A DNA stretch of 64,000 nt, taken from positions 62,001 through 126,000 of the IMG/VR virus record IMGVR_UViG_3300010158_000027; one strand, written 5' to 3'. Shown piece by piece: positions 7,583-34,726 of this stretch. How positions within the stretch are numbered: position 1 is the stretch's first letter; every line of letters begins with the position of its first letter. The notes under the pieces are model-generated. The model was not told where the DNA came from and did no database searches. It was given only the letters and a program-made list of their open reading frames with translations. The position numbers and the translations under genes were made by a program.

Positions 7583-8293
7583 ATGAAAATATTAGGTCCG
7601 AACGATTTAGGTAAAGGTATTCTAGTTGAGTGGGATGCTGGAATTATTAGTCCAACAGAACATAGAAACAGCCAAGTTATAAAGGAATCTTATGGTGAAT
7701 TAGATCATTCTAAACCGTTTATATTCTACGCCACTTTACAAAAATACGGTGTACCAAATAGAAACGGAAGGGTTTATCCTGAAAAGATATTAAAAAGAGA
7801 AGCTGAAAGATATAAAGAAATGATAAATCGTGGGATGTCCATTTCTGAACTTAACCACCCCGAATCATCACTTATAGATTTAGATAGAGTTGCTCATTTA
7901 ATCACTGAAGTATGGTGGGAAGATAATGTATTGATGGGTAAGATAAAACTATTAACTACTCCGGGTTTCCATGAAAGAGGTATTGTTTCTTCTAAAGGTG
8001 ATATCGCAGCGAACATGATGAGACAGGGTGTAACTATGGGTGTTTCTTCTCGTGGCGTTGGTTCATTGGTGAAAAAAGGTGAACAAAATGAAGTTCAAGA
8101 TGATTTCGAATTGATTTGTTTTGATTTAGTTTCATCACCATCTACCCCTGGGGCGTATCTATATGTTAATAAAGATGATAGATCGAAGTATGAAGAAAAA
8201 CTTACAGAACACGAAAATATTGACAAAACACCTAATCCTTTAAATAAATCTGTTGACTTAATGAGAAGATTATCCGATTATTTGGATAAATAA
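7583..8293 (+). CDS. gp21: prohead core protease, T4 gp21-like
   Basis: NRNGRVYP, ELNHP (catalytic His), GVSSRGVGS (catalytic Ser), FDLVSSPSTPGAY. Confidence 0.95.
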   Translation: MKILGPNDLGKGILVEWDAGIISPTEHRNSQVIKESYGELDHSKPFIFYATLQKYGVPNRNGRVYPEKILKREAERYKEMINRGMSISELNHPESSLIDLDRVAHLITEVWWEDNVLMGKIKLLTTPGFHERGIVSSKGDIAANMMRQGVTMGVSSRGVGSLVKKGEQNEVQDDFELICFDLVSSPSTPGAYLYVNKDDRSKYEEKLTEHENIDKTPNPLNKSVDLMRRLSDYLDK

Positions 8294-8305
8294 AAAATTT
8301 AAGAC

Positions 8306-8515
8306 ATGGATGAAAAGTATTTTGTAGCGAGAGTAACTACCGATATCGTAGATGAGACTACTGGAAAGGTAAAAAAAATTAGAGAAGAAAAATTAGTTAA
8401 AGCCTTCTCACCAACTGACGTCGAAGCTAAAGTGACGAAAGTTTATGAAACGTACACAATGGATTGGAGAATCACCGCAATTGTCGAAAGTAAGATAGAT
8501 GAAGTGATTGAATAA
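8306..8515 (+). CDS. small hypothetical protein
   Basis: 69-aa ORF with genome-typical codons, followed by a terminator. Confidence 0.75.
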   Translation: MDEKYFVARVTTDIVDETTGKVKKIREEKLVKAFSPTDVEAKVTKVYETYTMDWRITAIVESKIDEVIE

Positions 8516-8537
8516 TCTAAATTTTAACTAAAAAACT

Positions 8538-8569
8538 AAAAAGAATACCATACGGTATTCTTTTTTTTT
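8538..8569 (+). terminator. intrinsic terminator
   Basis: AAAAAGAATACC-ATAC-GGTATTCTTTTT stem-loop followed by a T run. Confidence 0.8.
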
Positions 8570-8665
8570 GTCCTAACAGTATTAAAAATAAACTTTTTTT
8601 AGGCTTTTTTATAACATCAACATATTTATTTAAGAAATAAACGATAAACGTATTAATTTTTATTA

Positions 8666-10153
8666 ATGTATACTGAAAATAACAAGTCAATAGTGGAGAC
8701 AGCTTTACTGCAAATTAAGGCAGTTGAGGACGCTATTAGTGAAAACGCAAAAGGAATACTTGCTTCAACGATGAAGGAAGAAATCAGTGAATTAGTTAGA
8801 GAATCACTAGTTGGTTCTAAAAAAACAAAATTACGTGAACAAGAAGAACAAGACCCTAATTTAGAGGTGGATGTAGAAGATGACGTTGACGTAGAAGACC
8901 CTGAAATGTCGGATGAGGAGGAACCTGAAACGGAACCTGAAGATCTAGAAACGGAACCTGAAGATGGTATGCCGTCTTTTGGTGATTTTAACTTATCAGA
9001 TGAAGGTGATAATCAAGAAATGCCTCCGTTAGATATGACTCAAGCACCAATTGGCGATGTACTTAAAGTATTTAGAGCAATGGGTGATGAAGACGGTATT
9101 ATTGTTGCTAAAGATAATGATGACATTTATCTTAAAGATGGTGACCATGAATACATTATTAGAACGGGAGCTGAAGAAACAAATACTCAAGAAATGATGG
9201 GAGACCAAATGAAAGAGGACGTTTTATATGAATTAGTTTTGGAAGACGAAGATGAAGATGGTGAGACTTTCGAATCCTATTTAGATGAAGAAGAAGAAAC
9301 TTATGAAAATGATTACGAAGAATTTAGAGAGTCGGCTAAAGTCGATGAACCTATGTTCGAAGATGAAGATGAAGATGAAACTGTTTACGAATTAGACGTT
9401 AACGAGATTGAATCTGTTATGGAAACTTTTAAAGCTAAAGGTATCGGAATGGGTAAAGCTGGAAACGGAATGAGTAAAGCTTCAGTAAACCTTAAAGGGT
9501 TTAAAGAAGATAAAAAATCAGGAGGTAGAGGAATCACAGGTAAAGGACCAAACTTCAAGTACCCTTCAATCAAACACGGAGTTACCGAAACAGACATGGA
9601 TGATGAGGAATTCAATGAGTGGGAAGAGGAAAGTAATGAGGGTATCGTGGATACTGAAACGACTGAATCGTCAAGAACCTTAGGTAAAGGAAGGTCTCAC
9701 GGACGTAATGGGTTACCTAAACCAAGAACATATTCATCACATGTAAGAAAAGAGTCAGTTGAGACAGAAATGAATCAGTTAAGAGAAAAAAATGATGAAT
9801 ATAAAAAAGCATTAGACTTCTTTAGAACAAAATTAAATGAGGTGGCGGTTTTCAATTCTAACTTAGCTTACTCAACAAGATTGTTTACTGAGCATTCTAC
9901 AACAAAACAAGAGAAAATAAATATACTTAGAAGATTCGATACTGTTGAATCTATTAAGGAATCTAAAAATCTTTACCAATCAATCAAAAAAGACTTAGAC
10001 GGAAAAGGTACAAGTGAAGTGGTTACTGAATCTATTCAGAATAAAGTAACTAGAACACCTCAAACCGGATCATCATCTAATTTGATTGAAAGTAAAACGT
10101 ACGAGAATCCTCAATTCATGAGAATGAAGGATTTAATGACAAAAATAAAATAA
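8666..10153 (+). CDS. gp22: prohead scaffold, T4 gp22-like
   Basis: Lies between protease and MCP; extremely acidic; C-terminal coiled coil KLNEVAVFNSNLAY...ESIKESKNLY. Confidence 0.8.
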   Translation: MYTENNKSIVETALLQIKAVEDAISENAKGILASTMKEEISELVRESLVGSKKTKLREQEEQDPNLEVDVEDDVDVEDPEMSDEEEPETEPEDLETEPEDGMPSFGDFNLSDEGDNQEMPPLDMTQAPIGDVLKVFRAMGDEDGIIVAKDNDDIYLKDGDHEYIIRTGAEETNTQEMMGDQMKEDVLYELVLEDEDEDGETFESYLDEEEETYENDYEEFRESAKVDEPMFEDEDEDETVYELDVNEIESVMETFKAKGIGMGKAGNGMSKASVNLKGFKEDKKSGGRGITGKGPNFKYPSIKHGVTETDMDDEEFNEWEEESNEGIVDTETTESSRTLGKGRSHGRNGLPKPRTYSSHVRKESVETEMNQLREKNDEYKKALDFFRTKLNEVAVFNSNLAYSTRLFTEHSTTKQEKINILRRFDTVESIKESKNLYQSIKKDLDGKGTSEVVTESIQNKVTRTPQTGSSSNLIESKTYENPQFMRMKDLMTKIK

Positions 10154-10179
10154 AATAAACTCAATTAAAAAATAAAAAA

Positions 10180-11982
10180 ATGGGAGCATTATTAGAATCA
10201 GGTCTTGTTGGTAACATCGGGTTAAAACACCTTAAAGTTATCAAAGAAGATACAATTAACAAATGGGATCGTTTAGGATTCCTAGATGGTTTGAAAGGAC
10301 ACATCAAAGAAAACATGGCGCAATTATATGAAAATCAAGCGTCTCACTTAATAAATGAAGCATCATCTACAGATAGCTCAGGTTCATTCGAAACTGTAGT
10401 TTTTCCTATCGTTAGACGTGTATTCTCTAAATTGTTGGCTAACGATTTAGTATCTGTACAAGCAATGAACTTACCTATCGGTAAATTGTTCTACTTCGTA
10501 CCTAAAATTCAAGGATACCAAGCTGCAGGAACTAATGAAACTGCACATTACGGACCTATTGGAGCTGATGGTGGACCAACACAAGCTCAAGCTCAGGCTG
10601 GTTACGGTGCGAATGACAAAAACCTTTACGATAGATTTTATGAAGGTAATGAACCAGGATTAGATCCAGCAGGTCTTTTTGATTATTCAAAAGGTTCTTT
10701 CACAGCAATTACTTCAAGTAATGTTGGTACTGTTGCTTGGTCAAACGGTCAATTAGTTGCTTCAGGTTACGGAGCAAGTAATGAGTATAGAAAAGTACTT
10801 ATTGGAATGTCTGGATTCTCTAACGCAGGAGCTGGTAAATTAATCGGACCTGATGGTCAAGAAATGGATAACGAATCTTTCTTAACTGATTTAAGGGTTA
10901 ATGCGGTTTCAACAGGAGCGTTTTCTGGAATGGGTTCAGGTGATGTACTTTTTAGAGTTGTTACTCAAAAATATGGTAAAGGTATCGTACAATACGGAAC
11001 ACAAACAAACACTACTTGGTCTTCTACCGGTAACGGTGGAGCATACGATAACATCTGTTCTCAAGATGGTATCATTTATTTAGAAGTTGACTGTCAAGTT
11101 CCTTGTTCAGTTGGAGCTAACTCAATCGACGGATATTCAGGACTTACTACGTCAGTTGCTGGTACTGGCGCTGCTGGATCTCAATTTACTTGTACCTTCA
11201 AAAGATACAAAGAATTAGAATTTGAAGATCAAATTGGTGAAGTTTCTTTTGACCTTGAGTCAGTTACTGTATCTGTTACAGAAAGAAAATTAAGAGCACA
11301 ATGGTCTCCAGAATTAGCACAAGACGTTTCTGCATTCCACAACATCGATGCTGAAGCTGAATTAACGGCTTTATTGTCTGAACAAGTGGCTGCTGAGATT
11401 GACCGTGAGATTTTACGTGATTTACGTAAAGGTGCGGCTTGGACACTACGTTGGGATTACAACGGATGGAAAAGAGGTACTGCGGCTAACCCGTTAACTC
11501 AATACACACAAAAAGATTGGAATCAAACTTTGATTACTGCGATTAACCAAATTTCAGCACAAATCCACAAATCTACATTGAGAGGTGGAGCTAACTGGAT
11601 CGTAGTTTCTTCTGAGATTTCAGCTATCTTTGACGATTTAGAATACTTCCACGTATCTAACGCGTCTCCTGAACAAGACCAATATAACATGGGTATTGAA
11701 AGAGTTGGTACTCTTGCAGGACGTTACCAAGTGTTTAGAGACCCTTACTTCCCACCAAACACAATCTTGTTGGGTCACAAAGGAACTTCATTGTTAGATA
11801 CAGGGTACGTTTACGCACCATATGTACCGTTACAATTGACACCTACAATGTATAACCCATTCAACTTCACTCCGATTAAAGGAATTATGACGAGATACGC
11901 GAAAAAAATGGTAAACAACCGTTTCTATGGTAGAATTACTGTTGATGGTGTTCGTACATTTGACTTAAGAGAATTGAGATAA
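10180..11982 (+). CDS. gp23: major capsid protein, T4 gp23-like
   Basis: LVSVQAMNLPIGKLFY, RKLRAQWSPELAQD, DAEAELTALLSEQVAAEIDREI, GYVYAPYVPL, P.KGIMTRY; strong codon bias. Confidence 0.97.
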   Translation: MGALLESGLVGNIGLKHLKVIKEDTINKWDRLGFLDGLKGHIKENMAQLYENQASHLINEASSTDSSGSFETVVFPIVRRVFSKLLANDLVSVQAMNLPIGKLFYFVPKIQGYQAAGTNETAHYGPIGADGGPTQAQAQAGYGANDKNLYDRFYEGNEPGLDPAGLFDYSKGSFTAITSSNVGTVAWSNGQLVASGYGASNEYRKVLIGMSGFSNAGAGKLIGPDGQEMDNESFLTDLRVNAVSTGAFSGMGSGDVLFRVVTQKYGKGIVQYGTQTNTTWSSTGNGGAYDNICSQDGIIYLEVDCQVPCSVGANSIDGYSGLTTSVAGTGAAGSQFTCTFKRYKELEFEDQIGEVSFDLESVTVSVTERKLRAQWSPELAQDVSAFHNIDAEAELTALLSEQVAAEIDREILRDLRKGAAWTLRWDYNGWKRGTAANPLTQYTQKDWNQTLITAINQISAQIHKSTLRGGANWIVVSSEISAIFDDLEYFHVSNASPEQDQYNMGIERVGTLAGRYQVFRDPYFPPNTILLGHKGTSLLDTGYVYAPYVPLQLTPTMYNPFNFTPIKGIMTRYAKKMVNNRFYGRITVDGVRTFDLRELR

Positions 11983-12007
11983 TCAAAAATCTTACGATAA
12001 TAACACT

Positions 12008-12035
12008 AAAGGGACAAGAAATTGTCCCTTTTTTT
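12008..12035 (+). terminator. intrinsic terminator after MCP
   Basis: AAAGGGACAA-GAAA-TTGTCCCTTT followed by a T run. Confidence 0.85.
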
Positions 12036-12117
12036 GGTTAAAGAAAAATGGTGAGTGGGTTAAAAATAAATGGGTTATAAATTGACTTTTTATATATTTT
12101 TATTATATTTATATAAA

Positions 12118-13845
12118 ATGTTCGTAATGAAAACTAAATTAACTCCCGATAATATATTAACAATTATTGAATTATATCAGACTGAAATACCAAGTACTCA
12201 TAAATTAGCGGAAAAGTTTAAAGTTGGACATAAAAAAATTAATCAATTATTAAAAGAGAATAATATTCAGATTAATAAAAAAGGGGGGCAAACTCAAATG
12301 GGTAATAGTCTCGAGATAGAATCGACTAAGAGTAAAATGTATTCTACTTCAGAAACAAAAGAATTAGTCGCTCAATGTGTCAAAACAAATATCATTATAA
12401 AAGACCCAAATAATCTATCGGGTAAATTAACAAAACATATTATTGAATTATATGGAGATGTTTGGCTACCAGCAAACACCTACCAAAGAAAAAAATATGA
12501 ACACATTAATGGTAAAAAATGGTTTGAAGATTATTTTAAGATAATAGAGGTTAATAAATCAATAAATAGAACTTGTAAGTTGTGTGAATGGACAACTACT
12601 GATACATCCAATAAAACAGGTGGTTTTGAGAATCATTTAGTTAATAGTCATAATTTACCATTAAATGATTATTTATCTAAATTCCCCGAAGATATTATAT
12701 ATCACCCAACCCATTCTAAAAAATTAGAGTTAACAAAATTTTTATCAATTAATTCAAATTTTGTTACTTGTAATTTATGTGGTGAAAAAATGAAAAGTAT
12801 TTCTAACACACATTTAAAGAGTAAACATAATATTACAACATTAGAATATAAACTAAAATACCCAAACAATAAAATTGTATCAACCTCTGTTTCAAAAAAA
12901 CTAAGCGACTTAGTTAAAATTACTAATATTAATATGACACCTACATGGACATCAAAGGGTGAAACTGAGATTAAAGAGTTTATTGAGAGTCTTGGGTTCG
13001 TAACAAATAAAGGTAAAAACCGAAAAATATTAGACGGTAAAGAGATTGATTTAATAATTGAAGGGACTAATATATGTATTGAATATAATGGATTGTATTA
13101 TCATACGGAAAGTATGGGTAAAAATAGTTCCTATCATTTAAATAAAACAATTGATTGTAATCAGATTGGTTATAAACTATTTCACATTTTTGAAGATGAA
13201 TGGAAAACAAACGAAGAGTTGGTTAAAAGGAAATTGAAGCATTTATTAAACGTTAATGATGGGATTAGAATTGGTGGGAGAAACGTTAAAATACAAAGTA
13301 TTACTTCCGAAGATAAATCATTTTTTCTAAAAAATAATCACATTCAAGGATCGGACAAATCTAACATATCATACGGAGCGTACTATAATGATGAATTAGT
13401 TGGTGTTATGACATTTAATAATAAGAGAAACATGACTAAAACCGCCAATGGGGAATTTGAGTTAAGTAGATTCGCTACTAAACAGAATTATGTTATTAGT
13501 GGTTTGGCATCAAAAATATTAAAACGTTTCGTTAAAGACCATTCACCAACGAGTATTGTTAGTTTTGCAGATAGAAGATGGACAATAGATGGTGATAATA
13601 ACTTATACACTAATTTAGGGTTTACTTTAGTGTCCATTACAAAACCAACGTACTATTATTATAATTCTAAGGTTAGTCGGTATAAAAGATTTCACAAATT
13701 TGGTTTCGGTAAAAATAATCTTAAAAAAAGATTTCCAGAATTAGATTATACTAAGACAGAAAAAGTATTAACTACCGAGTTGGGATATGACAGAATATGG
13801 GATTGTGGACTATTTAAGTATCAATTATTCATAAATAATAACTAG
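12118..13845 (+). CDS. putative free-standing homing endonuclease (Hef-like; HTH, zinc fingers, PD-(D/E)xK-type nuclease, GNAT-like tail)
   Basis: EIDLII...ICIEYNGLYYH nuclease motif; Cys/His fingers CKLCEW...HLVNSH and CNLCGE...HLKSKH; ELSRFA...SFADRRW...RIWDCG tail; start placed at ATG 12118. Confidence 0.7.
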   Translation: MFVMKTKLTPDNILTIIELYQTEIPSTHKLAEKFKVGHKKINQLLKENNIQINKKGGQTQMGNSLEIESTKSKMYSTSETKELVAQCVKTNIIIKDPNNLSGKLTKHIIELYGDVWLPANTYQRKKYEHINGKKWFEDYFKIIEVNKSINRTCKLCEWTTTDTSNKTGGFENHLVNSHNLPLNDYLSKFPEDIIYHPTHSKKLELTKFLSINSNFVTCNLCGEKMKSISNTHLKSKHNITTLEYKLKYPNNKIVSTSVSKKLSDLVKITNINMTPTWTSKGETEIKEFIESLGFVTNKGKNRKILDGKEIDLIIEGTNICIEYNGLYYHTESMGKNSSYHLNKTIDCNQIGYKLFHIFEDEWKTNEELVKRKLKHLLNVNDGIRIGGRNVKIQSITSEDKSFFLKNNHIQGSDKSNISYGAYYNDELVGVMTFNNKRNMTKTANGEFELSRFATKQNYVISGLASKILKRFVKDHSPTSIVSFADRRWTIDGDNNLYTNLGFTLVSITKPTYYYYNSKVSRYKRFHKFGFGKNNLKKRFPELDYTKTEKVLTTELGYDRIWDCGLFKYQLFINNN

Positions 13846-13925
13846 AAAGGGGTATTTATACATTCATATAGTTTTTTCATTATATTATTGTTTTAATGCT
13901 GTATATTTATAGTAAAATACATGTC

Positions 13926-16900
13926 ATGAAAAAAATACTATTTATTATCACTTTTTTATGGGCATTTGGTTTGTCCCATTCACAAGTCTCAACCAACTAC
14001 ACGTTTTCAGAAACCACTGGAACGTATGTCGCAGTAACATTGGGTACTCAGTTAGTAACAACAACTGCTGGAGCAACCTCATATGATACCGACGGTAGTT
14101 ATATCACATTATCATCAGGAAATCAATTCACATTTAATGGAACTACGATCACATCTGTTAATATGACGGCTGATGGAGCTCTTTGGTTAAATCCTGGAAC
14201 TTCAACAACAGGAAATGCTGTTACTGGTTCCATAACTTCAACAGCGACAGCTACTGGTGTTATATGTCCATTGAATATGGATTTAAGAAGTACTTCAGTT
14301 GCTTCAACCGTATATGAAAGAAGATGGTATGATGATGGAACTGAAGATATTTTTCAATGGCAAAATTGTGCTAGATATTTGCAAACTACTGAGAAAATTT
14401 CATTCCAAATTCGTATTAATAAATCTACCGGTGTAATACGTGTGGTATATGGTGCTATGACTGTAACTACATCTGTTACGTATCAACCATATGTTGGTTT
14501 AAGGGGGAGCGCAAATACTGACTTTAATAATAGACAATTAAGTGCAACAGTACCAGATGCCAGCCCAAACTGGGGGGCACCTAGTGGTACGGGTGCCGGA
14601 GCATCAAACGCTAACACATGTAGATTCCTTAGTACAGCATCATGTTTCCCATCGTCTGGGTTAATATTCATATGGACACCAAAACCGGTTATAACACCAT
14701 CGGTTTCTACATTATCGGCGTTTTCATCATGTTCAGGTAGCGTGTCTAGTACCCAAAACTTCACAGTAACGGGGTCTAATATGTTAGCTGGTATAACAAT
14801 AACACCCCCAGTTGGGTTCGAAGTATCGACAAGTTCCACATTTGCAAGTAGTGTTGGTACAAGTTCATCATCGTTAGTGGTAGGTGCTTCTGGTACAATT
14901 GCGTCAACAACAATATATGTTAGATTACAATCTACAGCATCAACAGGAACACCATCAGGAAACATAACATTAGCTAGTACTAGTGCAACAACCATGAATG
15001 TCGCAGTATCAGGAAATGTAGGTGTTAATCTATCTGCTGTGGTTGTGTCATCAAGTACTACCCAATCAATATGTTTAGGTAGTAATGGAACATCTGTATC
15101 TGTCGCTGAAACGGGTGGTGGAACAATCACCGCAAGACAATGGGGTAGACGATCAATTTCGGGTGGAGCAATAACTAATGTCACAGGAACCTCATCTTCA
15201 TATACACCATTAGGTACGGATTTCACAACGGTTGGTACGTATTATTTAGTATGTACATCAACACCTACTTGTGGGTCAGCTACGGTTTCAAATGAAGTTA
15301 CAATCACAATAGTTGGTTCTCCATCAGCCCCCGGCATACCAACAACCAATTCACCACAATGTGTATCTCCTGGTGTAACGTTAACGGCAAATGGTTCGGC
15401 ACCGGCTGGAGAAACTTGGTATTGGCAAACAACAAGTACTGGAGTTGCAACCACAAGTTTTGCAAGTACATATGTTGTTACAACATCAGGAACTTATTAT
15501 ATAAGATCTCAATACACATCAGGTGGTTGCTGGGGAAGTGCGTCGTCAGCAGCAATTGTTATTAGTACTGTACCATCGGCTCCTTCATTAACATCACCAA
15601 CTACAGCGGCTACTGGGGTAAGTTTAACACCAACATTAACTTGGGGTGCAGTTGCTGGAGCTACAAGTTATGATGTGTATATCGGAACAACCTTACCTGG
15701 AAGTCCGACAGCAAACGTATTAACCAATTCATATACACCATCTACATTGGCGGCATCAACAGGACATTCATGGAAAGTGATCGCTAAAAATGCGTGTGGT
15801 TCAAGTGTTGCGTCGTCCACATATACATTTACAACAACATGTGCGTCAGTTGCGTTAACATATACACAATTATTTAATGCCGCTACTACACCTTCATGTT
15901 GGTCAACATCTATTGCTGCTGTTCAAACCGGAACTAAGATATCGTATGTTACATCTTCAACATATCTGACAGCGTCACCTCAAGAAGGGACATATTTTGT
16001 AAAATATTATTCATATAGTAATTCAAATGGTGGATCTGGATCGGAAGAAAGATTAATTACACCATCAATTGTTACTACAAGTACATCAAGTGTTGATGTT
16101 GAATTTTATTGGTTTCAAGATAACAGTGCGTCATATAATAGTGGGTCTTATTTAAATGAAGGTGTAACGGTTGAATGGTCAACTAACGGAACAACTTGGA
16201 CGACATCAACATTTTATCCGAGACACGTAAGTTCGGCTTCGGCTACGGGTGAATGGTCCAAAAAAACAATAACATTACCTTCGGGAGCTGGAAATATCGC
16301 AACTTTATATGTGGCGTTTAAATTCCATTCTGAATATGGTTATAATATGTATATAGATAATGTTGTGATTAAACCAACACCAAGTTGTGCTGAGCCCACT
16401 TCATTAACTTCTTCATCTATTACTTCTACAACATCAACAATTTCATGGACAGCATCATCGTCATCACCATCGGGTGGGTATGACTATTATTTATCTACTT
16501 CATCAACCGCACCAACTGGTAGTTCAACACCAACAGGATCCGTCGGTTCGGGTGTGGTAACAACTAATTTAAGTAGTTTAACTAACTCAACATTATATTA
16601 TTATTGGGTTCGTTCAAATTGTGGTAGTTCAACTTATTCAACATGGGCCGGATCATCATTTACTACTCTAATACCAAATGACAATAGTGGTGGTGCTATC
16701 GACTTAACAATAAATCCAAGCACTACCTGTACAACCACAACTACAGGCACTAGTATTGGCGCAACTCAAACATTGGCGGCACAATCATTATATGGTACAG
16801 CTGATGATGATGTATGGTATAAATTTACAGCAACAGCCGTTAATTTAACTATGACAGTTGCTCGAGGTACTATGGGTGATTTGGTTGTTGAGGGATATAA

Positions 16901-17888
16901 TAGCTCATTAGTGTCTATGGGTGTCGTTGATGCTACTACTGGAACTGAAACTATAAATTGGACGGTAACTGTTGGGAATGTATATTATATTAGAGTTTAT
17001 AGTTATAGTTCATTAAGTAGTACTCGAGGAACATTTACTATCTGTATAACAACACCAACTCAGCCCCCAGTAAATGATAACGCATCCGGAGCTATAACGT
17101 TAATCGTTAATAACCCATACATAACAGGAACTAATGACGGGGCAACCTCATCGTCAACCGCACCAACACCAACAGGTCCATCTTATTATGGTGGAGATGT
17201 TTGGTATAAAGTGGTTGTACCCTCTGGTGGAACTTTTCAAATCAGAACATCGGCATTGGTATTAACAGATATCGTTATAGAGATATATTCGGGTACATCT
17301 TCAGCATTAACATATATAACATACAATGATGATAGTTCATCAGTAAATTCAATGTCATATTTAGAGGTAACCGGTAGAACTGTAGGTGAAACAATATGGA
17401 TTAGAGTTTGGGACTATAGTGGGGACAATACTGGAACATTCCAAATTAGAGTATCAACACCAGTCTCGTTACCTATTAGTTTAATATCATTTACGGGTCA
17501 CAATACGGTTGATGGTAATTCGTTGGAATGGAAAACAGCGTCTGAAGTTAACAGTGATTATTTCACATTGTCAAGGGGACTATATAGAGATGGTTCTGTC
17601 GAATGGTTAGAGTTACAATTTGTTAATGGTGCTGGTAATTCAAATATTATTAACACATACGGGTATTTCGATTTAGACTACCCAAACGATATAAATTATT
17701 ACCAATTAACTCAAACAGATTATGACGGTAATTCGGTAACATATGATATGATTTCTATCGATAATAGAATAAATAGTAAAATAATATCATCTATGGTAAA
17801 TTTACTTGGACAAGAGGTAAATGAAAACTATAGGGGAATTGTGGTTGTAACATACACAGATGGTTCTGTGGAAAAAATAATGAAATGA
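13926..17888 (+). CDS. secreted Ser/Thr-rich multidomain adhesin-like protein (Ig/FN3/PPC-like) with a Bacteroidota T9SS-like C-terminus
   Basis: Signal peptide [19 protein letters not shown]; FN3-like CAEPTSL...ISWT...YDYY; two ND...DVWYK modules; [10 protein letters not shown]...[14 protein letters not shown]...[11 protein letters not shown]; tail NLLGQEV...YTDGSVEK. Confidence 0.8.
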
Positions 17889-19171
17889 AAAAATTAATAA
17901 TAGTATTATCCTTTATTTTAAATTCAATATTAACCCTTGCTCAACCATCAAACGATGATTGTAGTGGAGCTCAGAATCTAGGAACATTACCAACACCCTC
18001 GGCATGTCCAAGTGGTGTTGGTTCTTTTGTTAATGTGGTGGGTACCACAATAAACGCAACCTCACCATCTCCTTATACCTATTTATTGGGTTGTCAAACG
18101 GGTGGTAATCAACCTGCACCTGCATTAGATGTATGGTATAAATTCGTCGCTTCAGGTACTCAAGTTAATATAAATATAACACCAGGATCAGCTCCCGTTT
18201 TACAAAGTCCATCAATAACATTATGGATCGGAACAAATTGTTCAACTCTTTCAGGGGTTAACTGTGATAATAATGGAACGGTTGCTGGTAATAATAGTGT
18301 AACTTTCCAACCATTAATTCCTGGAACAACATACTACATACAAGTTAGTGGAATGACTTCAGGTGGGTCAGGTAATTTTAACATGTCCGTTAATAGTACA
18401 AACGATTGTAATAATTGTTTACAAACGTCAAGTCTTACATCAATACCATCACCCACAAATGGAGCGTTTTTACCAAATCAGTCCGTATCTTTTTCTTATA
18501 CAATAACTACATACACACAAGTATCCGCCAATTGGTTACATGGAGTTATTCCAACATTTGGTAATGGGTGGGATTTATCAACACTAGTGAATGTTGCTGC
18601 TATCTCATGTTCGGGTAGTGGTACGTGGATTTGGTATAATAGTAATACTAGTACCGCAACTGGTACTACCACAGGACCTGGGTTTTACTATAATTATCCT
18701 GGTGGAACTGCCGGTAATAACTACGGTGATAATAACTCTTCTGGAGCATGTACTTGGACATTTTTCTGGGCAATTAAAACAAAACCAAACTGCACGTCGG
18801 GAACTAACTTAAACATTTCCATTAATACAACCGCTGATGGTGAGACTGGGTCTTGGACAAGCGTTGCTTGTTTGGGGGATCCTAATTATAGTTTTGGTGC
18901 TGTTTTAAATTGTTGTACCACTACAGCAACTTTCACAAACCCCACTTGTAATAATGGTACTAATGGAACGGCAACTGCTGTACCGAACGGAATCGCACCT
19001 TATACATATTCATGGAATACATCACCAATTCAAACAACACAAACAGCAACAAATCTACCATCAGGTACGTACACAGTTACAGTAACAGACGCATCTGGAT
19101 GTGTATCAACAGCGACAGTAACGATCATAAATCCAAGTCCAATAGTTGTTGGCAACATAATACATAATTAA
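17885..19171 (+). CDS. secreted protein with a C-terminal SprB repeat
   Basis: Signal peptide; ND.C...DVWYKF module; [13 protein letters not shown]...APYTYSW...[19 protein letters not shown] is an SprB-type repeat. Confidence 0.8.
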
Positions 19172-19183
19172 AAATAAAAAGTC

Positions 19184-19747
19184 ATGAAAAAATTATTAAT
19201 CTTAGCTCTATCATTAATATCCTTAGTCGGATATTCTCAATCAACAGTAAATCCTGACACAGTTTGTTATCAAACAAATGGATCAACATACACGGTACCA
19301 TCTTTAGGTGCTGGGTATACGTATACATGGACAATCGCTTCACCTGGTGTGATAACTGCAGGACAAACAACGAATTCAATAGTTGTGGATTGGTCGACAG
19401 CATCTCCTGGTTTAATAAACAGTGGTGTAAGTGTTGTTGCTTCAAGTGCTAGTGGATGTTTAAGTACTCCCGTAACATTAAATGTTTTAATATACCAAGT
19501 ACTTCCAACGATTACCCCTATCGGGCCTTTCTGTACTGGCGCTGCTTGTGTTACTTTAGTTGGAACACCAATTGGTGGTGTATTTACAGGTACTGGGGTT
19601 GTCGGTAATCAATTTTGTCCTGTCACATCAGGTGTAGGAACATTTACATTAACTTATACTGTTACATCGTCTGGTTGTACGTTCACAACAACTACATCAG
19701 TTACGGTAACACCAATTCTAACACTATCTCCGATACAACATAATTAA
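19184..19747 (+). CDS. secreted PKD/Ig-like protein
   Basis: Signal peptide; YTYTWT...GQTTNSIVVDW and GGVFTGTGV...FCP...GVGTFTLTYT are typical of Bacteroidota Ig-like repeats. Confidence 0.75.
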   Translation: MKKLLILALSLISLVGYSQSTVNPDTVCYQTNGSTYTVPSLGAGYTYTWTIASPGVITAGQTTNSIVVDWSTASPGLINSGVSVVASSASGCLSTPVTLNVLIYQVLPTITPIGPFCTGAACVTLVGTPIGGVFTGTGVVGNQFCPVTSGVGTFTLTYTVTSSGCTFTTTTSVTVTPILTLSPIQHN

Positions 19748-19748
19748 A

Positions 19749-20321
19749 ATGAAATTAATTTTAACAATATTATTTTTAACAGGTTTCTTCACATATTCTC
19801 AACAAGTCATTGAGATATGTGAGGGAGAATCTGTGTCTTATACATATTCGATTAATTCACAAATACCTATGAATTTTGATTGGGTAGTTAATGGCGATCA
19901 CTATTTGGTGGATGAGTTAACTATGGATTGGTCGGTTGCTGGGACATATGATATATCAGTAACAGGTTATTCCGTTAACGGAGATTGTCCATCTGATACC
20001 CAAAACTATAATGTTGTTGTTATTTTTTGTGAAGAAATGGTGTATTGGGTTCCTAATACATTTACACCAGACGATGATGAACATAATCAATATTTCTATC
20101 CTGTAATAACGGATGGTATTGATATTAATGATTTTACCTTTTTGATTTTTAATAGGTGGGGTGAGGTTATATGGGAATCTCATGATACCTCAGCTAAATG
20201 GGATGGGTATTATAAGGGAAAAAAATGTCAAGATGGGGTTTATATATGGAAGATGGTGTTTGGTATTAGTAGTAGTGATAAGAGAATCGATACACACGGA
20301 CATTTAAATATATTAAGATAA
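19749..20321 (+). CDS. secreted protein with gliding-motility-associated (T9SS type B, CHU_C-like) C-terminal domain
   Basis: Signal peptide; WVPNTFTPDDDEHNQYF...IFNRWGEVIWES...WDGYY...QDGVYIW. Confidence 0.88.
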   Translation: MKLILTILFLTGFFTYSQQVIEICEGESVSYTYSINSQIPMNFDWVVNGDHYLVDELTMDWSVAGTYDISVTGYSVNGDCPSDTQNYNVVVIFCEEMVYWVPNTFTPDDDEHNQYFYPVITDGIDINDFTFLIFNRWGEVIWESHDTSAKWDGYYKGKKCQDGVYIWKMVFGISSSDKRIDTHGHLNILR

Positions 20322-20330
20322 AATTAATGT

Positions 20331-20717
20331 GTGAGTTTTCCTAACCGACACATATTTATATGTATGGAAAAGAAAAATAAGGTTGGTGGCGGTGGAAATA
20401 GACTAGCATACGAAAATGGACTTCTTAAATATATTAAATCTATTAGATTAACAAATGATGAAGTTTTTGTTGAAAACTCAACATACGCAAGACACCACAT
20501 TAAAAGACGAATAATTGAAGAGAATCTAGTTGATTACAAGTGTGATGAATGTGGTAATGTGGGTAGTTGGAATAATAAACCACTACCGTTGATTTTAGAC
20601 CACATAAATGGTATAAATAACGATAATAGGTTGGAAAATCTAAGATTTGTTTGTAGTAACTGCGATTCTCAATTACCAACCTATAAAAATAGGAGAGGTA
20701 GTAAAGGAAAAAAGTGA
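20331..20717 (+). CDS. HNH endonuclease
   Basis: CDEC...LILDHINGINNDNRLENLRFVCSNCD; start may be ATG 20364. Confidence 0.9.
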   Translation: MSFPNRHIFICMEKKNKVGGGGNRLAYENGLLKYIKSIRLTNDEVFVENSTYARHHIKRRIIEENLVDYKCDECGNVGSWNNKPLPLILDHINGINNDNRLENLRFVCSNCDSQLPTYKNRRGSKGKK

Positions 20718-20780
20718 TTGGGGGATGAAATTAATAGTCTGGTTTTATAAAACTAGGATATTTATATAAACAATAACTTC

Positions 20781-20867
20781 GGAGAGTTGTCAGAGCCTGG
20801 TTTATCGAGACAGACTTGAAATCTGTTGTACTGAAAGGTACCGTAGGTTCGAATCCTACACTCTCCG
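20781..20867 (+). tRNA. trnS: tRNA-Ser(UGA)
   Basis: GGAGAGT/ACTCTCC acceptor, ACAGA-CTTGAAA-TCTGT anticodon arm, long variable arm, GTTCGAATC; CCA not encoded. Confidence 0.95.
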
Positions 20868-20885
20868 CTGAAGTACATCTAAATT

Positions 20886-20959
20886 GGGGGATTAGCTCAG
20901 CTGGCTAGAGCACCTGCCTTGCACGCAGGGGGTCAACGGTTCGACTCCGTTATCCTCCA
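20886..20959 (+). tRNA. trnA: tRNA-Ala(UGC)
   Basis: GGGGGAT/ATCCTCC acceptor with G3:U70, CCTGC-CTTGCAC-GCAGG anticodon arm, GTTCGACTC; CCA not encoded. Confidence 0.95.
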
Positions 20960-20990
20960 CTTTTAACCTTAAAAAGGATATTTATTACAT

Positions 20991-21716
20991 ATGATTGATG
21001 ATATTATAAGAAAAGCAATAAGGGAAGCAACATCTACGTCAGGGTCTGGTAGGGGTTCATACATCGCGCCCCTAACTAACGGCATTCGTAAATTTAAAGA
21101 TATCGATAATCAACCGTTCACCATACAGGTATCCAAATACGATTCACCATTTTTAGAATATGATAGTTACGATGGGTCAATGTCGACACCAAAAAAACAA
21201 ATCAAAAAAATAGAAAAACAGGCAGAAAAAATTACCAATTATATTACAAACCATCCTTACGCAACATTTAGTGATGATGACGGTAATGTTATAAATCAAA
21301 CGCCAGGTAAAGGTAAAAAATTCGTACCAATTAATGAGTGGGTTGATTTAAATAGTATTAATTTAAATGAGGATTTAGGTGTTTGGTTTGGTACTAAGAA
21401 AAAACCGAAGGGGTCTAAACAACCAAAAGGGCCGTGGGTTAATATATGTAGAAAAGTCGATGGTAAACATCCCCCTTGTGGTAGGTCAGAAACGGATAGT
21501 GGTGGATACCCTAAATGTCGAGCTGCCGGTGTTGCAGGAAAAATGTCTGACTCAGAAAAAAAATCAGCATGTCAACAAAAAAGAAGTGCAGAGAAAAAAG
21601 ATACACAAACAGGAAAGGGACAAAAACCTGTAATGACCCATTACGAACCAAAAAAGAAAAAGACTCAAAATGAGTCTTTAGAAATGATTGTTAGAAATAT
21701 TTTAAATAGTTTTTAA
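20991..21716 (+). CDS. hypothetical protein with a Cys-containing WF...PCGRS...YPKC domain (DUF5872-like)
   Basis: DLGVWFG...WVNIC...PCGRS...GYPKCR...MSDSEKKSA motif recalled from viral proteins. Confidence 0.5.
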   Translation: MIDDIIRKAIREATSTSGSGRGSYIAPLTNGIRKFKDIDNQPFTIQVSKYDSPFLEYDSYDGSMSTPKKQIKKIEKQAEKITNYITNHPYATFSDDDGNVINQTPGKGKKFVPINEWVDLNSINLNEDLGVWFGTKKKPKGSKQPKGPWVNICRKVDGKHPPCGRSETDSGGYPKCRAAGVAGKMSDSEKKSACQQKRSAEKKDTQTGKGQKPVMTHYEPKKKKTQNESLEMIVRNILNSF

Positions 21717-22174
21717 CAGTAAGCTCCCGAACAATGTCTTTTACCGTCTAACCCTTTAATTTTTCCTTTACAGACTTGTACAGCGTGTCCATTTGAATAA
21801 GCTGAGGGCCAAACATCATATTTAGCTTTAGCCGATGCGATACCTCTCGAACAAAGTTTAGTTCCCACTTTCTTTTTACCCTCCTTAACCATATCTTTAT
21901 CATCAATATCCATTGATAATTCCATACCGTCTTTCTTGGTTTCATTCATTAAAAAATCAAATACTTGATCCATATTGTTTTTTGATTCAGAAATATGATC
22001 TTGAGCCCAATCATGACCATTGTCTAAGATTTTTTCAACCATACTTTCATCTAAATCTAAAAGTAAATCACACTGTCTTCTCATTTGTTCTAAATTAGAA
22101 AAAAACATATATCTGGATGATCCGTCATGTTCTTCTTTTAAAACTTTTTTAATTATTTTTGATAAATTGTCCAT
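21713..22174 (-). CDS. hypothetical protein with a KYDVWPSAY motif
   Basis: C-terminal LCSRGIASAKAKYDVWPSAYSNGHAVQVCKG; converges on the previous gene. Confidence 0.6.
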   Translation of the reverse strand: MDNLSKIIKKVLKEEHDGSSRYMFFSNLEQMRRQCDLLLDLDESMVEKILDNGHDWAQDHISESKNNMDQVFDFLMNETKKDGMELSMDIDDKDMVKEGKKKVGTKLCSRGIASAKAKYDVWPSAYSNGHAVQVCKGKIKGLDGKRHCSGAYC

Positions 22175-22175
22175 A

Positions 22176-23657
22176 TTATTTCTTGTTTACTATTTGGAAT
22201 TTTAATTCCCTTTTATACGTATCAACATTTCTATCCGTGTTAACTTTAATATCTATAAAATATTCATTAGGTATTTTATCTTTAGTGTCAAAAATAAAAT
22301 AATACCCATCAGATGTCTTATTTATCTGTGTCCAATCTTGGACTTGGACTTCAGTTTTACCACCCTCCTTAACGTAAATTCTGTAATATGCCTCAACTTT
22401 GTTTAAGAGTTGATTTGATGTATAGGCTTCTTTAATTGTTACATTAACTTTTCTAATGTCAGTATTGAGTATTTTTTCATCTTGTTTTATTCCGTCAAAA
22501 CTAAAACCATATATCTTAGGTTTAGAGTTTGTTGTACCGATTTGAAAGTTACCTCCCGTTTCTAAAAGTGCGAATTCGTTTTCAACATCACTAATAACTG
22601 TTCCGTTAATAGTTAAACCTTTCCAAGTGTCGTAATATAAACAAGGTACCAATGTTGAGGTTAATCCACTTACGTTAACCTTATAAACCCCCTTAGTTAC
22701 TAAACACGTTGATAGTGATGTGTATCCAGTTAAGACATTACCATTCATATCACTTATGTCGACAGTAGGTGGTGTATCTAAATTAATTGGGTTTCCGTTA
22801 TCAAACGCATATAAATAAAGATTATTATCGTTTCCTGCGTAAAATGAATTTCTATCGTCAAGTATTAAATCATCATATGATGTTTCTAAAAATGGTTCAT
22901 AAAAAGTTTGGGTGTGGGGTGAGAAAAATCCGACAGAGTAATTTTCAGTTAATCCTGATATGTTCTCAACTTGTGGGTAATATGCGACTCCCCATCCCGT
23001 CACTCCAGTAATCGAACCATCCAATACTCCGTTAATTTCGTTTGTCATATTAAATTCAATATCCTCATCTCCGAATTCAAAATGTTGTATATCAACTATA
23101 GTTAATGCCGAGTAATTAACGCCACTACCCGTTAACGTATTGTCGTTTTCATATATTCCATTTGTTGACCACCCACTAATAGTTGTTCTTTCAAACCAAT
23201 TTGTTGGTCTTTGTGAGAATGATCTATCATTAAGATTTGTAACCCCAAAATCAGTATAATCATACCCAACACCACTATCCCAAATTTGTGGGACTCCGGT
23301 TGATCCGGAAGTGTTAGGGATTCTAAATAATAATAAATCAAATGAGATAGCTCGTCTTCTACCTTGTGAGGTTTTATCATTAATAAGTTCGTTATCGAAA
23401 AACGAAGTATTCGTCATTCTAAGGGTGTGAGTTAAACCCGAATAACCATAACAATCTGTTGATATGGTACCACCGCTAATTTTATCTTGTAACCCATCTA
23501 AATCAACATTAAAAATGTAACGACTGTAACCCAATGGTATTGCGACATTATCGACCCTACCATAAAATAATTCAACAATGGGATTTCTACTCGTATTGGT
23601 ATACGAATTATAAATTAACGTGTTTGATTTGTTAAAATATGATTTGTGAATAGACAT
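22176..23657 (-). CDS. hypothetical, probably virion structural protein
   Basis: 493-aa beta-rich ORF, TATTTATA 14 nt upstream, next to the gp5-like gene. Confidence 0.65.
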   Translation of the reverse strand: MSIHKSYFNKSNTLIYNSYTNTSRNPIVELFYGRVDNVAIPLGYSRYIFNVDLDGLQDKISGGTISTDCYGYSGLTHTLRMTNTSFFDNELINDKTSQGRRRAISFDLLLFRIPNTSGSTGVPQIWDSGVGYDYTDFGVTNLNDRSFSQRPTNWFERTTISGWSTNGIYENDNTLTGSGVNYSALTIVDIQHFEFGDEDIEFNMTNEINGVLDGSITGVTGWGVAYYPQVENISGLTENYSVGFFSPHTQTFYEPFLETSYDDLILDDRNSFYAGNDNNLYLYAFDNGNPINLDTPPTVDISDMNGNVLTGYTSLSTCLVTKGVYKVNVSGLTSTLVPCLYYDTWKGLTINGTVISDVENEFALLETGGNFQIGTTNSKPKIYGFSFDGIKQDEKILNTDIRKVNVTIKEAYTSNQLLNKVEAYYRIYVKEGGKTEVQVQDWTQINKTSDGYYFIFDTKDKIPNEYFIDIKVNTDRNVDTYKRELKFQIVNKK

Positions 23658-23680
23658 TAAAGTATTTTTATTATAAATAC

Positions 23681-25258
23681 TTAGTTAATCCGAATATTAC
23701 CATTTAACACTTTGATATATGCTTCTTGCATTTTTTTAAGTACGTCATCAGTTGAAATTCCAGACCCTCGACTTATTGGGCTTGGGGGTAACATTGGGTA
23801 TGGGTGATCGTGAGTAATTAAAAAATTAACAATAATTTGTAATAGTTCCATCAATTCTTCCCCCCTAACCATCGAAGACGTGTTAGGTTCAATTACGTCC
23901 GTAAAGGTATTGCCCGTTATACCGTATATGGATTCGTCCAATACTATACTATCTTTGCCGGGTATTGATGTTTTATGACTTAAAAGGTAAAGTTGATCAG
24001 CTCCAAGAGTTGCTACGGTATTATCCGATTTTTCAAATTTAACTGGAACTATAACTTCATTCACCTCATCATATGGTAGTGGAGTTTTAAATCCCTTATA
24101 TACCGAACCATAACCTGGAGTTAAATCGGTTGGTGTAACCATAACCTCATTAATCAAACGAGACATATTTTCAACGGAGACTAAATCGATATTCCCCGAA
24201 AGGTCCGTTAACACGTTTCTAATTTGTTCATTTGGTCGATAATAAAAAGGAAATTGACTGTCTTTTTGTATATCACATATTTTTGTTGGGTCGGAATGAA
24301 ATTGTTTAATTACCCCCACTATGGTTTTTTTAAAATCATCAAAAGATAGTGCCTGTACGTTTAAATTATAAACAATCCCATACGAACTTTGCCCTGTTAA
24401 TGTGGTATCATAATCAAAAAACCCAACTTGAGTTTCATATGAGTTGGTCGTTGGTAACTGTATAATTCTTATACCCCCACTAAATATCCCAACACTTGAA
24501 TTCATTGTTGTACAATAATACTCAATTAAATATTTTAATTGGTCCTTTCTATCTACTAATTTTTTAAAGGATTCGGGTTCACCAAATTTTTGTATTTTAT
24601 CTAATTTAGAGAGCTGTAAAAACGCTCTGTTATTATTAACTGCCGGTACCTCACCTCTTTGAGCTTCTTTATGTTTTCCAGCCCTTAAAAGGATATCGTC
24701 TTTTTTAACTATTATATCGGCAGTATCTCGACCCTTTATTGCTATATCCATTGGTTCCGCAAATACCCCACGTTTGTATGGGTCTTTATATGTGCCGCCC
24801 GTGTTTTTAATGTTTGGTATACTTTGTAATGAATTATCATGCCCATCATCTAAACCACTTTTAGATGATCTATAATCTTCTTCTAAAATTGTCATTGGTG
24901 ATGAAAACGGACCAACCATATAGAATTTATTTCTACCTGTTGTTCTTTTTCTGTCGAAATATAAAATCATAACCCTTTCCGTTGGTTTGGGTACTTGATT
25001 TATAAAATAAGGTAAGAAGGGTAAAAACACAAATGGGTCTTTTGGTGACCACGGACCGTCCTTTTCTGACGTACTGTCGGGATTAAATCCATTTTTTATC
25101 GCTGACTTTTCAACCTGATCGACATTTTTTACTAATGGTTTAACCCTAACTCTTCCTATCATTAATGGGTCTTCATTATCCACACATACGCCCCAATAAA
25201 AATTTTGGGTCATATCTTGTGAAAATGAATCTACTTGTAGTATTTCGCCTTTAGACAT
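23681..25258 (-). CDS. gp5: baseplate hub/spike protein with a gp5-like OB-fold N-terminus
   Basis: YWGVCVDNEDPLMIGRVRVK is a gp5/VgrG OB motif; C-terminal THDHP; no lysozyme motif seen. Confidence 0.65.
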   Translation of the reverse strand: MSKGEILQVDSFSQDMTQNFYWGVCVDNEDPLMIGRVRVKPLVKNVDQVEKSAIKNGFNPDSTSEKDGPWSPKDPFVFLPFLPYFINQVPKPTERVMILYFDRKRTTGRNKFYMVGPFSSPMTILEEDYRSSKSGLDDGHDNSLQSIPNIKNTGGTYKDPYKRGVFAEPMDIAIKGRDTADIIVKKDDILLRAGKHKEAQRGEVPAVNNNRAFLQLSKLDKIQKFGEPESFKKLVDRKDQLKYLIEYYCTTMNSSVGIFSGGIRIIQLPTTNSYETQVGFFDYDTTLTGQSSYGIVYNLNVQALSFDDFKKTIVGVIKQFHSDPTKICDIQKDSQFPFYYRPNEQIRNVLTDLSGNIDLVSVENMSRLINEVMVTPTDLTPGYGSVYKGFKTPLPYDEVNEVIVPVKFEKSDNTVATLGADQLYLLSHKTSIPGKDSIVLDESIYGITGNTFTDVIEPNTSSMVRGEELMELLQIIVNFLITHDHPYPMLPPSPISRGSGISTDDVLKKMQEAYIKVLNGNIRIN

Positions 25259-32118: not shown

Positions 32119-32220
32119 TTATTTTTTTAAAAAGATATGGTTTTTTTCAAAATATTCAATAGTTTTTTTAATACCATCGTAGCGTGTGGCAAATTTAAAG
32201 TTAGGTAAATAACGTTTTAT
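32119..32220 (-). pseudogene. start-less 3' remnant resembling the tail of an NDP-sugar epimerase/GDP-fucose synthase
   Basis: Intergenic frame reads IKRYLPNFKFATRYDGIKKTIEYFEKNHIFLKK-stop with no ATG. Confidence 0.55.
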
Positions 32221-34721: not shown

Positions 34722-34726
34722 AGTTA

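Follow-up and report, generated by a model that had tools for sequence, protein, structure and literature searches.

Why would a phage encode, a short distance behind its major capsid gene, a set of secreted proteins built like bacterial surface adhesins? This question is raised by four genes, here called c1 to c4, on the viral contig IMGVR_UViG_3300010158_000027 (281 kb), of which we analyzed a stretch of 64 kb (the window). The genes are consecutive open reading frames (ORFs) on the plus strand; c1 and c2 overlap in the sequence ATGA, and gaps of 12 nt and 1 nt separate c2 from c3 and c3 from c4. A preliminary description, made from the letters of the window, had read them as four tightly packed genes, each with its own signal peptide, that specify adhesins of the kind exported by type IX secretion systems (T9SS) of Bacteroidota. 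The ORF coordinates and the N-terminal sequences confirmed the packing and the signal peptides. The implied picture of four parallel adhesins had to be given up: c2, c3 and c4 form one tripartite module, next to which c1 is an optional neighbor. Judging from the sequence comparisons, this module is probably a split version of one host adhesin family.

The three genes occur together far beyond the window. Full-length homologues of c4 (about 190 amino acids, aa) are encoded on contigs that always carry a c2-like gene, a c3-like PKD_6 gene and then the CHU_C gene, and the module is present on at least 50 distinct viral contigs in unrelated neighborhoods (loci L089-L092, L093-L095, L096-L097, L098 and L177-L179). 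In L093-L095, L096-L097 and L098 the trio stands alone, beside M23/VanY peptidases, lysozyme, UvrC-like genes or thioredoxin. Many full-length homologues exist for c2 (about 425-445 aa, 54-93% identity), and those of c3 form 542 clusters at 90% identity; the best 120 of them are almost all 185-193 aa long, and all 116 full-length proteins among these 120 end with H[ND]. To survey the module in viruses, we scanned IMG/VR with the c3 alignment, which gave 115 confirmed stretches; the best 80 loci, corresponding to 57 distinct stalks, were kept (c2, c3 and c4 are referred to below as head, stalk and base). All 57 stalks end in HN or HD, and 54 of them have a signal peptide, as called here and throughout by a simple hydrophobicity heuristic. 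An ORF was found upstream of the stalk in 52 of the 54 evaluable cases; all 52 heads end in HN or HD, 51 start with a signal peptide, and 50 are c2-like. Downstream, an ORF was present in 51 of 53 evaluable cases (50 with a signal peptide, 49 CHU_C-like). Stalk identity among the 57 unique viral copies was 54-97%. The shortest head had 193 aa and the longest 490 aa, and 197 aa was the commonest length. Every head variant has the Cys/Trp-rich domain, and no other domain is shared by all; the 197-aa heads (L177, L179) have nothing else. The head in the window, with its PPC-like domain, Cys/Trp-rich domain and SprB repeat, is thus a long variant.

Two further observations concern the surroundings of the module. 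An extra 52-aa ORF without a signal peptide lies between stalk and base in L093 (9876-10034), and the module or its unsplit form is often found a few kb from NlpC/P60, M23, VanY, lysozyme or PG_binding genes (L004, L093, L096, L179).

The unsplit forms allowed us to locate the cuts. On the unsplit protein of L004, PKD_6 spans profile positions 3-74, with 'VTLTPIVG' at positions 3-10 and the conserved Cys at position 15. The c3 match sets in later, with residue 23 at profile position 10, and Cys28 takes position 15. The tails of the heads align residue for residue with the strand that c3 lacks; in one example, the tail NPPQIILGPINHN-COOH pairs with DPPQVTLTPIVGS of L004. The junction between c3 and c4 has the same layout, with the tail TPILTLSPIQHN-COOH. 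According to the profile starts and the tail alignments, each of the two cuts therefore comes directly behind the first strand of the Ig-like domain that follows. This first strand is retained on the upstream protein as a conserved tail ending in PIxHN-COOH, where a terminal His-Asn replaces the usual Gly-x. The motif P[IVL]xH[ND] was found 0 times in 27 unsplit ORFs (50,678 aa), and in the split proteins the tail is conserved irrespective of the domain that precedes it (heads of 197 to 490 aa).

Conservation of the CATAATTAA junction at the nucleotide level was rejected, as its codons vary synonymously (CAT/CAC, AAT/AAC, CCA/CCG/CCC and ATA/ATC/ATT); thus, selection acts on the peptide. Recoding or read-through that would join c2, c3 and c4 was rejected as well. 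The frame relations differ among homologues, neighboring genes either share codons or lie between 1 nt and about 160 nt apart, and all downstream pieces start with well-formed signal peptides; the additional 52-aa ORF between stalk and base in one homologue also disfavors read-through. In AlphaFold2 models of the single chains, c2 (pLDDT 80, pTM 0.72) and c3 (pLDDT 82) both have a tail that is a coil of lower confidence. The many conserved cysteines, 15 in c2 and 6 in c3, fit folding outside the cytoplasm. At the level of sequence, the module shows what is expected of donor-strand complementation, that is, a domain lacking a strand in cis and a matching extension on its neighbor.

Where do the unsplit proteins occur? 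A scan of one genome per species returned 76 loci, nearly all of them in metagenome-assembled genomes (MAGs) of Bacteroidota (Crocinitomicaceae, Flavobacteriales, Saprospiraceae and others). A c2-like N-terminal head (40-57% identity) and a c4-like CHU_C end belong to one and the same protein of 1000-2700 aa in more than 20 complete bacterial ORFs, and incomplete unsplit bacterial ORFs exceed 3400 codons. Unsplit proteins are also encoded by the megaphages LR756502.1 (642 kb, protein of 1670 aa) and LR745206.1 (635 kb, 732 aa), and the 744-aa protein of L004 lies in the neighborhood of the split L093 (UvrC-like, DUF6576, PAP2 and DUF5856 genes). Among 50,697 GenBank phage records, homologues were present only in these two megaphages, where they are unannotated and unsplit, and in no cultured phage.

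How could the pieces leave the cell? The N-termini of c1 to c4 all consist of M-K-(K), a hydrophobic stretch, S or A, and then Q. This follows a pattern of Bacteroidota, in which substrates of signal peptidase I start with a Gln that becomes pyroglutamate. In c3 homologues, A, S or G directly precedes the Q in 105 of 116 cases. A hydrophobicity screen of the window ORFs of at least 80 aa identified as signal-peptide-like only c1 to c4 and one spurious-looking 99-aa ORF, so that no other credible signal-peptide ORF of this size is present in the 64 kb. The base additionally carries a T9SS type B sorting domain. The CHU_C profile PF13585 matched c4 with 50 bits (cut-off 27) over positions 3-73 of 86, and TIGR04131 matched with 38.9 bits (cut-off 35) over positions 3-83 of 85. 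The closest solved relative of this C-terminal domain (CTD) is the C-terminus of Aureispira GhpA (PDB 9flp, residues 5814-5882), to which it aligns. The CTD region of c4 is 45-50% identical to those of bacterial adhesins bearing a c2-like head (L103, L123, L145); c4 plausibly uses the shuttle of these adhesins. Type B CTD cargo requires, and is anchored by, shuttles of the PorP/SprF type (PMC12618676, PMC9143113); the gene for the cognate shuttle often adjoins the cargo gene, and CTD-shuttle pairing is specific (PMC12618676). Near the unsplit bacterial homologues, only L114 had a right-sized PorP/SprF candidate, without a Pfam match.

Neither PF13585 nor TIGR04131 matched c1, c2 or c3. The Pfam SprB model gave no match on the c2 of the window at E ≤ 5; PF13573 is precomputed in c2 homologues of 60-70% identity, and residues 345-420 of c2 retrieve many proteins named SprB repeat-containing, at 45-65% identity. 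From the list of adhesin parts in the preliminary description, CHU_C and a PKD-type domain (PKD_6) were thus found above the cut-offs, fn3, at 23 bits against 25, and GBD_T9SS_assoc/PPC, at 15-22 bits against 26-27, stayed below them, and the SprB repeat was recognizable only via homologues. The profile scans that it had proposed as a check gave a significant CHU_C match on c4, no direct SprB match and no T9SS type A match on c1. The proposed use of the host T9SS is directly supported for c4, whose type B CTD exceeds the curated cut-offs, but not for c2 and c3, which have no sorting domain, nor for c1, which fails the type A tests described below.

The large c1 protein begins with a conserved domain that belongs to no Pfam family. 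It further has a Cleaved_Adhesin domain, modules resembling fn3 and PPC that stay below threshold, and a C-terminal Ig-like domain followed by a conserved 40-aa element. Over its first 270 aa, c1 shows 63% identity to the product of the leading gene of a four-gene cassette in L089. A variable protein of 908-2051 aa with a canonical Por_Secre_tail (PF18962) comes before the trio in L089-L092, the c1 counterpart of L089 included; c1 is absent beside the module in L093, L096, L098 and L177-L179. On the c1 of the window, no type A CTD was detected with PF18962 (aa 1180-1330, E ≤ 5) or with NCBIfam/TIGR04183 (E ≤ 1), and a profile-profile comparison of c1-type C-termini with canonical type A CTDs in hhalign gave a probability of 0.8% and an E-value of 0.07. 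These three results do not support the idea that the c1 C-terminus is a truncated type A CTD. A phmmer search of c1 against PDB sequences gave no match. In our reading, c1 stands apart from the trio as a large adhesin-like protein of optional occurrence, with translational coupling to c2 and predicted Sec export.

The C-terminal unit of c1, an Ig-like domain with a tail of about 40 aa ('..VNLLGQEV..G....Y.DGS..K..K'), is common to several secreted proteins encoded at the insertion site described below; it was also found at L023 9837-10286, at L041 6876-7325 and twice in L066 (16296-16745 and 18480-18929). This unit could be a distinct sorting or anchoring signal. Within c1 there is a 247-aa antisense ORF (14483-15226, minus strand), with an equivalent in L002, which most likely just reflects the Thr/Gly/Ser-rich composition of the coding strand.

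The cassette follows the genes for the large terminase, the portal, the prohead protease and the 600-aa major capsid protein. Is this position meaningful? Relatives of the capsid protein are encoded on at least 598 viral stretches; for 61 loci we could place the capsid gene together with a conserved downstream gene (usually the counterpart of the gene at 20991). The interval between the two (11983-20990 in the window; loci L009-L088) is hypervariable and ranges from 70 bp to 9 kb. The distance is at most 170 bp in 8 of the 61 loci (e.g., L013, L020, L063) and 300-650 bp in most others; the remainder have inserts of 1-9 kb with unrelated content. Many of the fillings are small signal-peptide- or lipoprotein-like ORFs, proteins with an N-terminal 'RILNLHE' repeat motif, zinc-ribbon proteins and endonucleases. 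The four-gene cassette was found at this hotspot only in the contig of the window and in the near-identical L002 and L003 (79-97% protein identity), and relatives with 75-88% identical capsid proteins lack it. The comparison with related genomes suggested in the preliminary description thus showed a patchy cassette and an empty site in many relatives. The adjacency to the capsid gene noted there is correct in that the cassette is nearby, but a homing endonuclease gene lies between them. The adjacency has no functional meaning: the site is a variable hotspot and the module sits elsewhere in other phages.

In L002 and L003, the gene upstream of the cassette is another one, HNH-like and of 228 aa, and the 591-aa endonuclease is missing. 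This variation, together with the bracketing of the cassette by two homing-type endonuclease genes, suggests endonuclease-associated mobility. Directly 3' of the capsid gene, a terminator-like hairpin (12008-12031) is formed by a 10-bp stem followed by a T run, and the cassette may therefore sit outside the capsid transcript. A promoter scan with the sigma-70 model, which is not applicable to Bacteroidota or phage promoters, remained at chance level. The GC content of the cassette is raised (0.38), and the GC content at third codon positions (GC3) is 0.18-0.25, as low as in phage core genes. Recent capture from a host of higher GC content was rejected, as the raised GC content reflects amino-acid composition and GC3 matches the phage. 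The features of the region are compiled in Table 1.

Table 1 Features of the adhesin cassette and its flanks (nucleotide positions of the window)
Feature	Position	Strand	Evidence or remark
Major capsid protein gene	10180-11982	+	phrog_138, E 5.4e-66; left border of variable hotspot
Homing endonuclease gene, 591 aa, upstream flank of cassette	12070-13845	+	phrog_3339, E 2e-85; absent in L002/L003
c1, secreted multi-domain protein, large and variable; 1320 aa when counted from Met11	13926-17888 (alternative start 13896)	+	ORF call
c1 signal peptide, predicted cleavage between SHS and Q	13926-13982	+	sequence and heuristic
c1 Cleaved_Adhesin (gingipain HA-type), aa 660-824	15873-16367	+	PF07675, E 2.4e-5, 24.8 bits, cut-off 21.4
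c1 fn3-like domain, sub-threshold	16392-16640	+	PF00041, E 8.3e-5, 23.2 bits, cut-off 25
c1 two PPC/GBD_T9SS_assoc-like domains, sub-threshold	16707-17351	+	PF23759 and PF04151, E 0.01-0.06
c1 C-terminal Ig-like domain and conserved element of ~40 aa	17451-17885	+	alignments
c2, head piece, 428 aa	17885-19171	+	full-length homologues; homology to unsplit bacterial heads
c2 signal peptide, cleavage between LA and Q	17885-17941	+	Q20 invariant in 28 homologues
c2 PPC-like/GBD_T9SS_assoc-like domain	17951-18361	+	PF23759, E 2.2e-4, sub-threshold
c2 Cys/Trp-rich head domain, no Pfam family	18410-18919	+	conserved Cys and Trp in alignment
c2 SprB-type repeat, aa 346-414	18920-19126	+	PF13573 of homologues, no direct Pfam match
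c2 C-terminal connector tail, equivalent to first strand of next PKD_6 domain	19127-19168	+	alignment with unsplit L004
c3, stalk piece, 187 aa	19184-19747	+	PF19408 (PKD_6), E 5.6e-9
c3 signal peptide	19184-19237	+	
c3 PKD_6 domain	19250-19480	+	36.7 bits, cut-off 25
c3 second Ig-like domain	19496-19711	+	
c3 tail ending LSPIQHN	19712-19744	+	
c4, base piece, 190 aa	19749-20321	+	PF13585, E 3.4e-13; TIGR04131, E 7e-10
c4 signal peptide	19749-19799	+	
c4 PKD-like domain	19800-20033	+	
c4 T9SS type B sorting domain	20049-20312	+	PF13585, TIGR04131
HNH endonuclease gene, downstream flank of cassette	20331-20717	+	phrog_10822, E 3e-29
tRNA-Ser and tRNA-Ala	20781-20960		
Conserved gene, right border of hotspot	20991-21716	+	directly follows capsid gene in cassette-free relatives

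What could such a module do? In the model that we propose, a single modular adhesin of the cell surface would have c2 as its head, c3 as its stalk and c4 as its base; it would be a miniature form, split three ways, of the giant T9SS type B adhesins (SprB/GhpA class) found in the Bacteroidota host. The three pieces would be exported separately by Sec to the periplasm and fold there, and they would then dock head to tail by strand complementation, with the tail of c2 completing the first domain of c3 and the tail of c3 completing the PKD-like domain of c4. Through the CTD of c4, the complex would be taken out and held at the surface by the host T9SS and a PorP/SprF-type shuttle; a host shuttle is invoked because the phage encodes none nearby. 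The infected cell would thus display a phage-specified copy of its own adhesin family, which would alter what the cell sticks to, and the displayed copy would compete with the full-length adhesins of the host for the shuttle and for track sites. We assign this model of assembly and display, taken as a whole, a probability of about 0.5. Our confidence in any specific biological role is much lower. Altered adhesion specificity and competition with the host adhesin would be the two leading ideas about the pay-off, and they are not mutually exclusive. The surface redecoration and receptor masking put forward in the preliminary description are, we infer, plausible. SprB and RemA are thought to be receptors of flavobacterial phages, and mutations in T9SS and gliding genes give phage resistance (PMC9804748).

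Several points weigh against the assembly-and-display model. c2 and c3 have no sorting domain or recognized outer-membrane export signal, and we know of no report of the T9SS exporting a non-covalent complex. No Pfam match to PorP/SprF was found in c1 to c4 or in the scanned neighbors (64 kb of the 281-kb contig). The host would be an uncultured member of Bacteroidota, as judged only from homologues in MAGs (closest in Crocinitomicaceae, 53-56% identity). Docking of the tails into the domains is predicted from sequence, with AlphaFold2 models of single chains, and strand complementation gives no account of the invariant His-Asn carboxy terminus. In Foldseek searches, the c2 head matched generic beta-sandwich adhesion ectodomains, among them the ColG collagen-binding domain (TMt 0.56-0.59, most likely on the PPC-like domain), and its best viral match was a GEVED protein of Virus NIOZ-UU157; as these matches are generic, no ligand can be named. 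Finally, a split head, stalk and base is also encoded on a 348-kb Bacteroidota MAG contig (L101, 7950-12077), where the flanking genes are bacterial housekeeping genes (DEAD helicase, MazG, methylmalonyl-CoA mutase). The head of L101 has 901 aa and ends in IIHN, and its stalk ends in PIQHN. Of the roughly 45 bacterial loci that could be evaluated, no other is split. Its bacterial chromosomal context means that the split form is not exclusive to phages, and a phage-only invention was rejected.

The same genes could be explained without any assembly, as four independent adhesin-like morons, with c4 at the surface, c2 and c3 remaining periplasmic or being released by lysis, and the HN tails serving stability or processing. 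This agrees with the individual signal peptides, with the absence of a CTD from c2 and c3 and with the confident folding of the AlphaFold2 monomers without a partner. However, it does not sit well with the strict head-stalk-base order on more than 50 distinct viral contigs, with two junctions cut at the same position inside an Ig domain, with a tail conserved whatever domain precedes it, or with unsplit one-protein versions in the same genomic neighborhood, and we consider it rather improbable. Alternatively, the module might serve not for adhesion but, by analogy with Llp of T5, as a competitive blocker: a short decoy would occupy the type B shuttle, the T9SS and the gliding track of the host, so that the host adhesin, a putative receptor, would be lost from the surface, which would exclude superinfection and spare the progeny from sticking to debris. 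The similarity of the c4 CTD region to those of the c2-head-bearing bacterial adhesins (45-50% identity; L103, L123, L145) speaks for this, as do the specificity of CTD/shuttle pairs (PMC12618676), the implication of T9SS adhesins as receptors of flavobacterial phages (PMC9804748) and the accessory presence or absence of the module among close relatives. Yet a CTD stub would suffice for blocking, whereas the head domain and the assembly tails are strictly conserved, and a host adhesin as the receptor of this particular phage is a supposition. We regard blocking as an unlikely explanation of the module.

Decoration of the virion, on the capsid or tail, possibly by proteins that particles acquire after lysis, could be suspected from the location of the cassette, which follows the head genes closely and shares their strand, from the frequency of Ig, fn3 and PKD domains on virions and from BFVD matches that include proteins named virion structural protein. 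The signal peptides (on 51 of 52 heads, on 54 of 57 stalks and on 50 of 51 bases), the many conserved cysteines and the T9SS sorting domain are against it, as are the location of the module away from structural genes in other phages, its absence from relatives with 75-88% identical capsid proteins and the strong terminator-like hairpin after the capsid gene. Hoc-like capsid decoration proteins are cytoplasmic, lack signal peptides and are encoded with the head genes in relatives, a pattern that the module does not follow. The earlier statement that the proteins are exported rather than capsid-decorating therefore stands, with signal peptides in nearly all homologues and no cassette in most relatives that share the capsid, and a virion role appears very improbable. 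No more credible is a selfish passenger, that is, host-derived DNA without a phage function that is carried along by the flanking homing endonucleases. The two endonuclease genes, the patchily occupied hotspot and the existence of bacterial homologues would fit; but the ORFs are intact, with stalks of 54-97% identity over 57 unique viral copies, neither the Cys residues nor the tails vary, GC3 has come into line with that of the phage, and the module recurs in many phage backgrounds.

To our model of a split and reassembled adhesin, SprB-class proteins (SprB of F. johnsoniae, GhpA of Aureispira) are similar in having a signal peptide, SprB- or PKD-type Ig repeats and a C-terminal type B CHU_C/TIGR04131 domain. 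They are, however, single polypeptides of 1000-6500 aa, whereas about 750 mature residues are distributed here over three genes of a phage-borne module, with a signal peptide on each piece and PIxHN-COOH tails that the unsplit proteins lack. Type A T9SS cargo encoded by a phage has been reported once, in Cryophage (76 kb; Bellas et al. 2020), where hijacking of the host T9SS was proposed (PMC7468147), and crAss-BACON ORFs carry T9SS sorting domains (PMC6949934). In those cases, too, secreted proteins with T9SS domains are encoded in variable genome regions of Bacteroidota phages, and a role in competition or superinfection exclusion was proposed; but the domains there are of type A and located on single enzymes or PA14 proteins, in contrast to the type B domain on a three-gene split adhesin found here across many phage lineages. 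Donor-strand fibres (chaperone-usher pili and the type V pili of Bacteroidota) share with the module an Ig-like domain without an edge strand, a corresponding terminal extension on the neighbor and assembly after Sec export. Unlike them, the module has no gene for a chaperone, usher or activating protease and would form a fixed hetero-trimer instead of a polymer; its C-terminal tail would provide the first (A) strand, its anchor is a T9SS CTD, and complementation is here deduced from sequence. Accessory exported phage proteins that change the surface of the infected cell are Llp of T5, Cor of phi80/N15 and Lom/Bor of lambda. The idea of a changed surface is similar, but there is no relation in sequence or fold, and the export route is different. 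In the literature searched, we came across no account of type B cargo in phages, of T9SS adhesins in split form or of a PIxHN tail.

Some features of the window lie apart from the cassette. The portal gene (2957-5734) contains a 319-aa intein with an HNH homing endonuclease (3236-4192), which starts with 'CIAGETKI' and ends with 'FSHN', followed by Thr. The portal of L010 is uninterrupted ('YESMEY-TPEISAAL'), and most relatives have no insert; L062 appears to have it. The tRNA-Ala(TGC) at 20886-20960 shares 88% identity over 76 nt with a tRNA-Ala gene of Aeromonas phage Ahp1_CNU-2021, and this is the only megablast match of window positions 8000-24000 to GenBank phages. On the minus strand, a low-GC island (32217-39639; 0.23-0.27 versus 0.33) comprises about ten genes, including two for GT2 glycosyltransferases and those for an FkbM methyltransferase, an FAD oxidoreductase and a xylose-isomerase-like TIM barrel; it is a glycan-modifying cluster and possibly a second surface-remodelling function.

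To summarize what the locus may mean, we tentatively suggest, at less than even odds, a T9SS filament route that has not been described so far. In it, three exported pieces, cut in Ig domains, would be rejoined via PIxHN-COOH donor tails and would leave on the single CTD of the base. The kit would be spread by jumbo phages of Bacteroidota with interchangeable heads (193-490 aa), comparable to the swappable tip of a tail fibre but located on the infected cell and not on the virion. The T9SS is understood to work with one CTD per cargo, and a kit in which two of the three partners have no CTD would show whether it carries non-covalent complexes. If true, the tails would represent a natural split-Ig connector and a possible protein-assembly tag. 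Many uncultured jumbo phages of freshwater Bacteroidota would then invest in remodelling the infected cell's surface by means of a copy of a host adhesin family that has been implicated in gliding, adhesion and phage adsorption.

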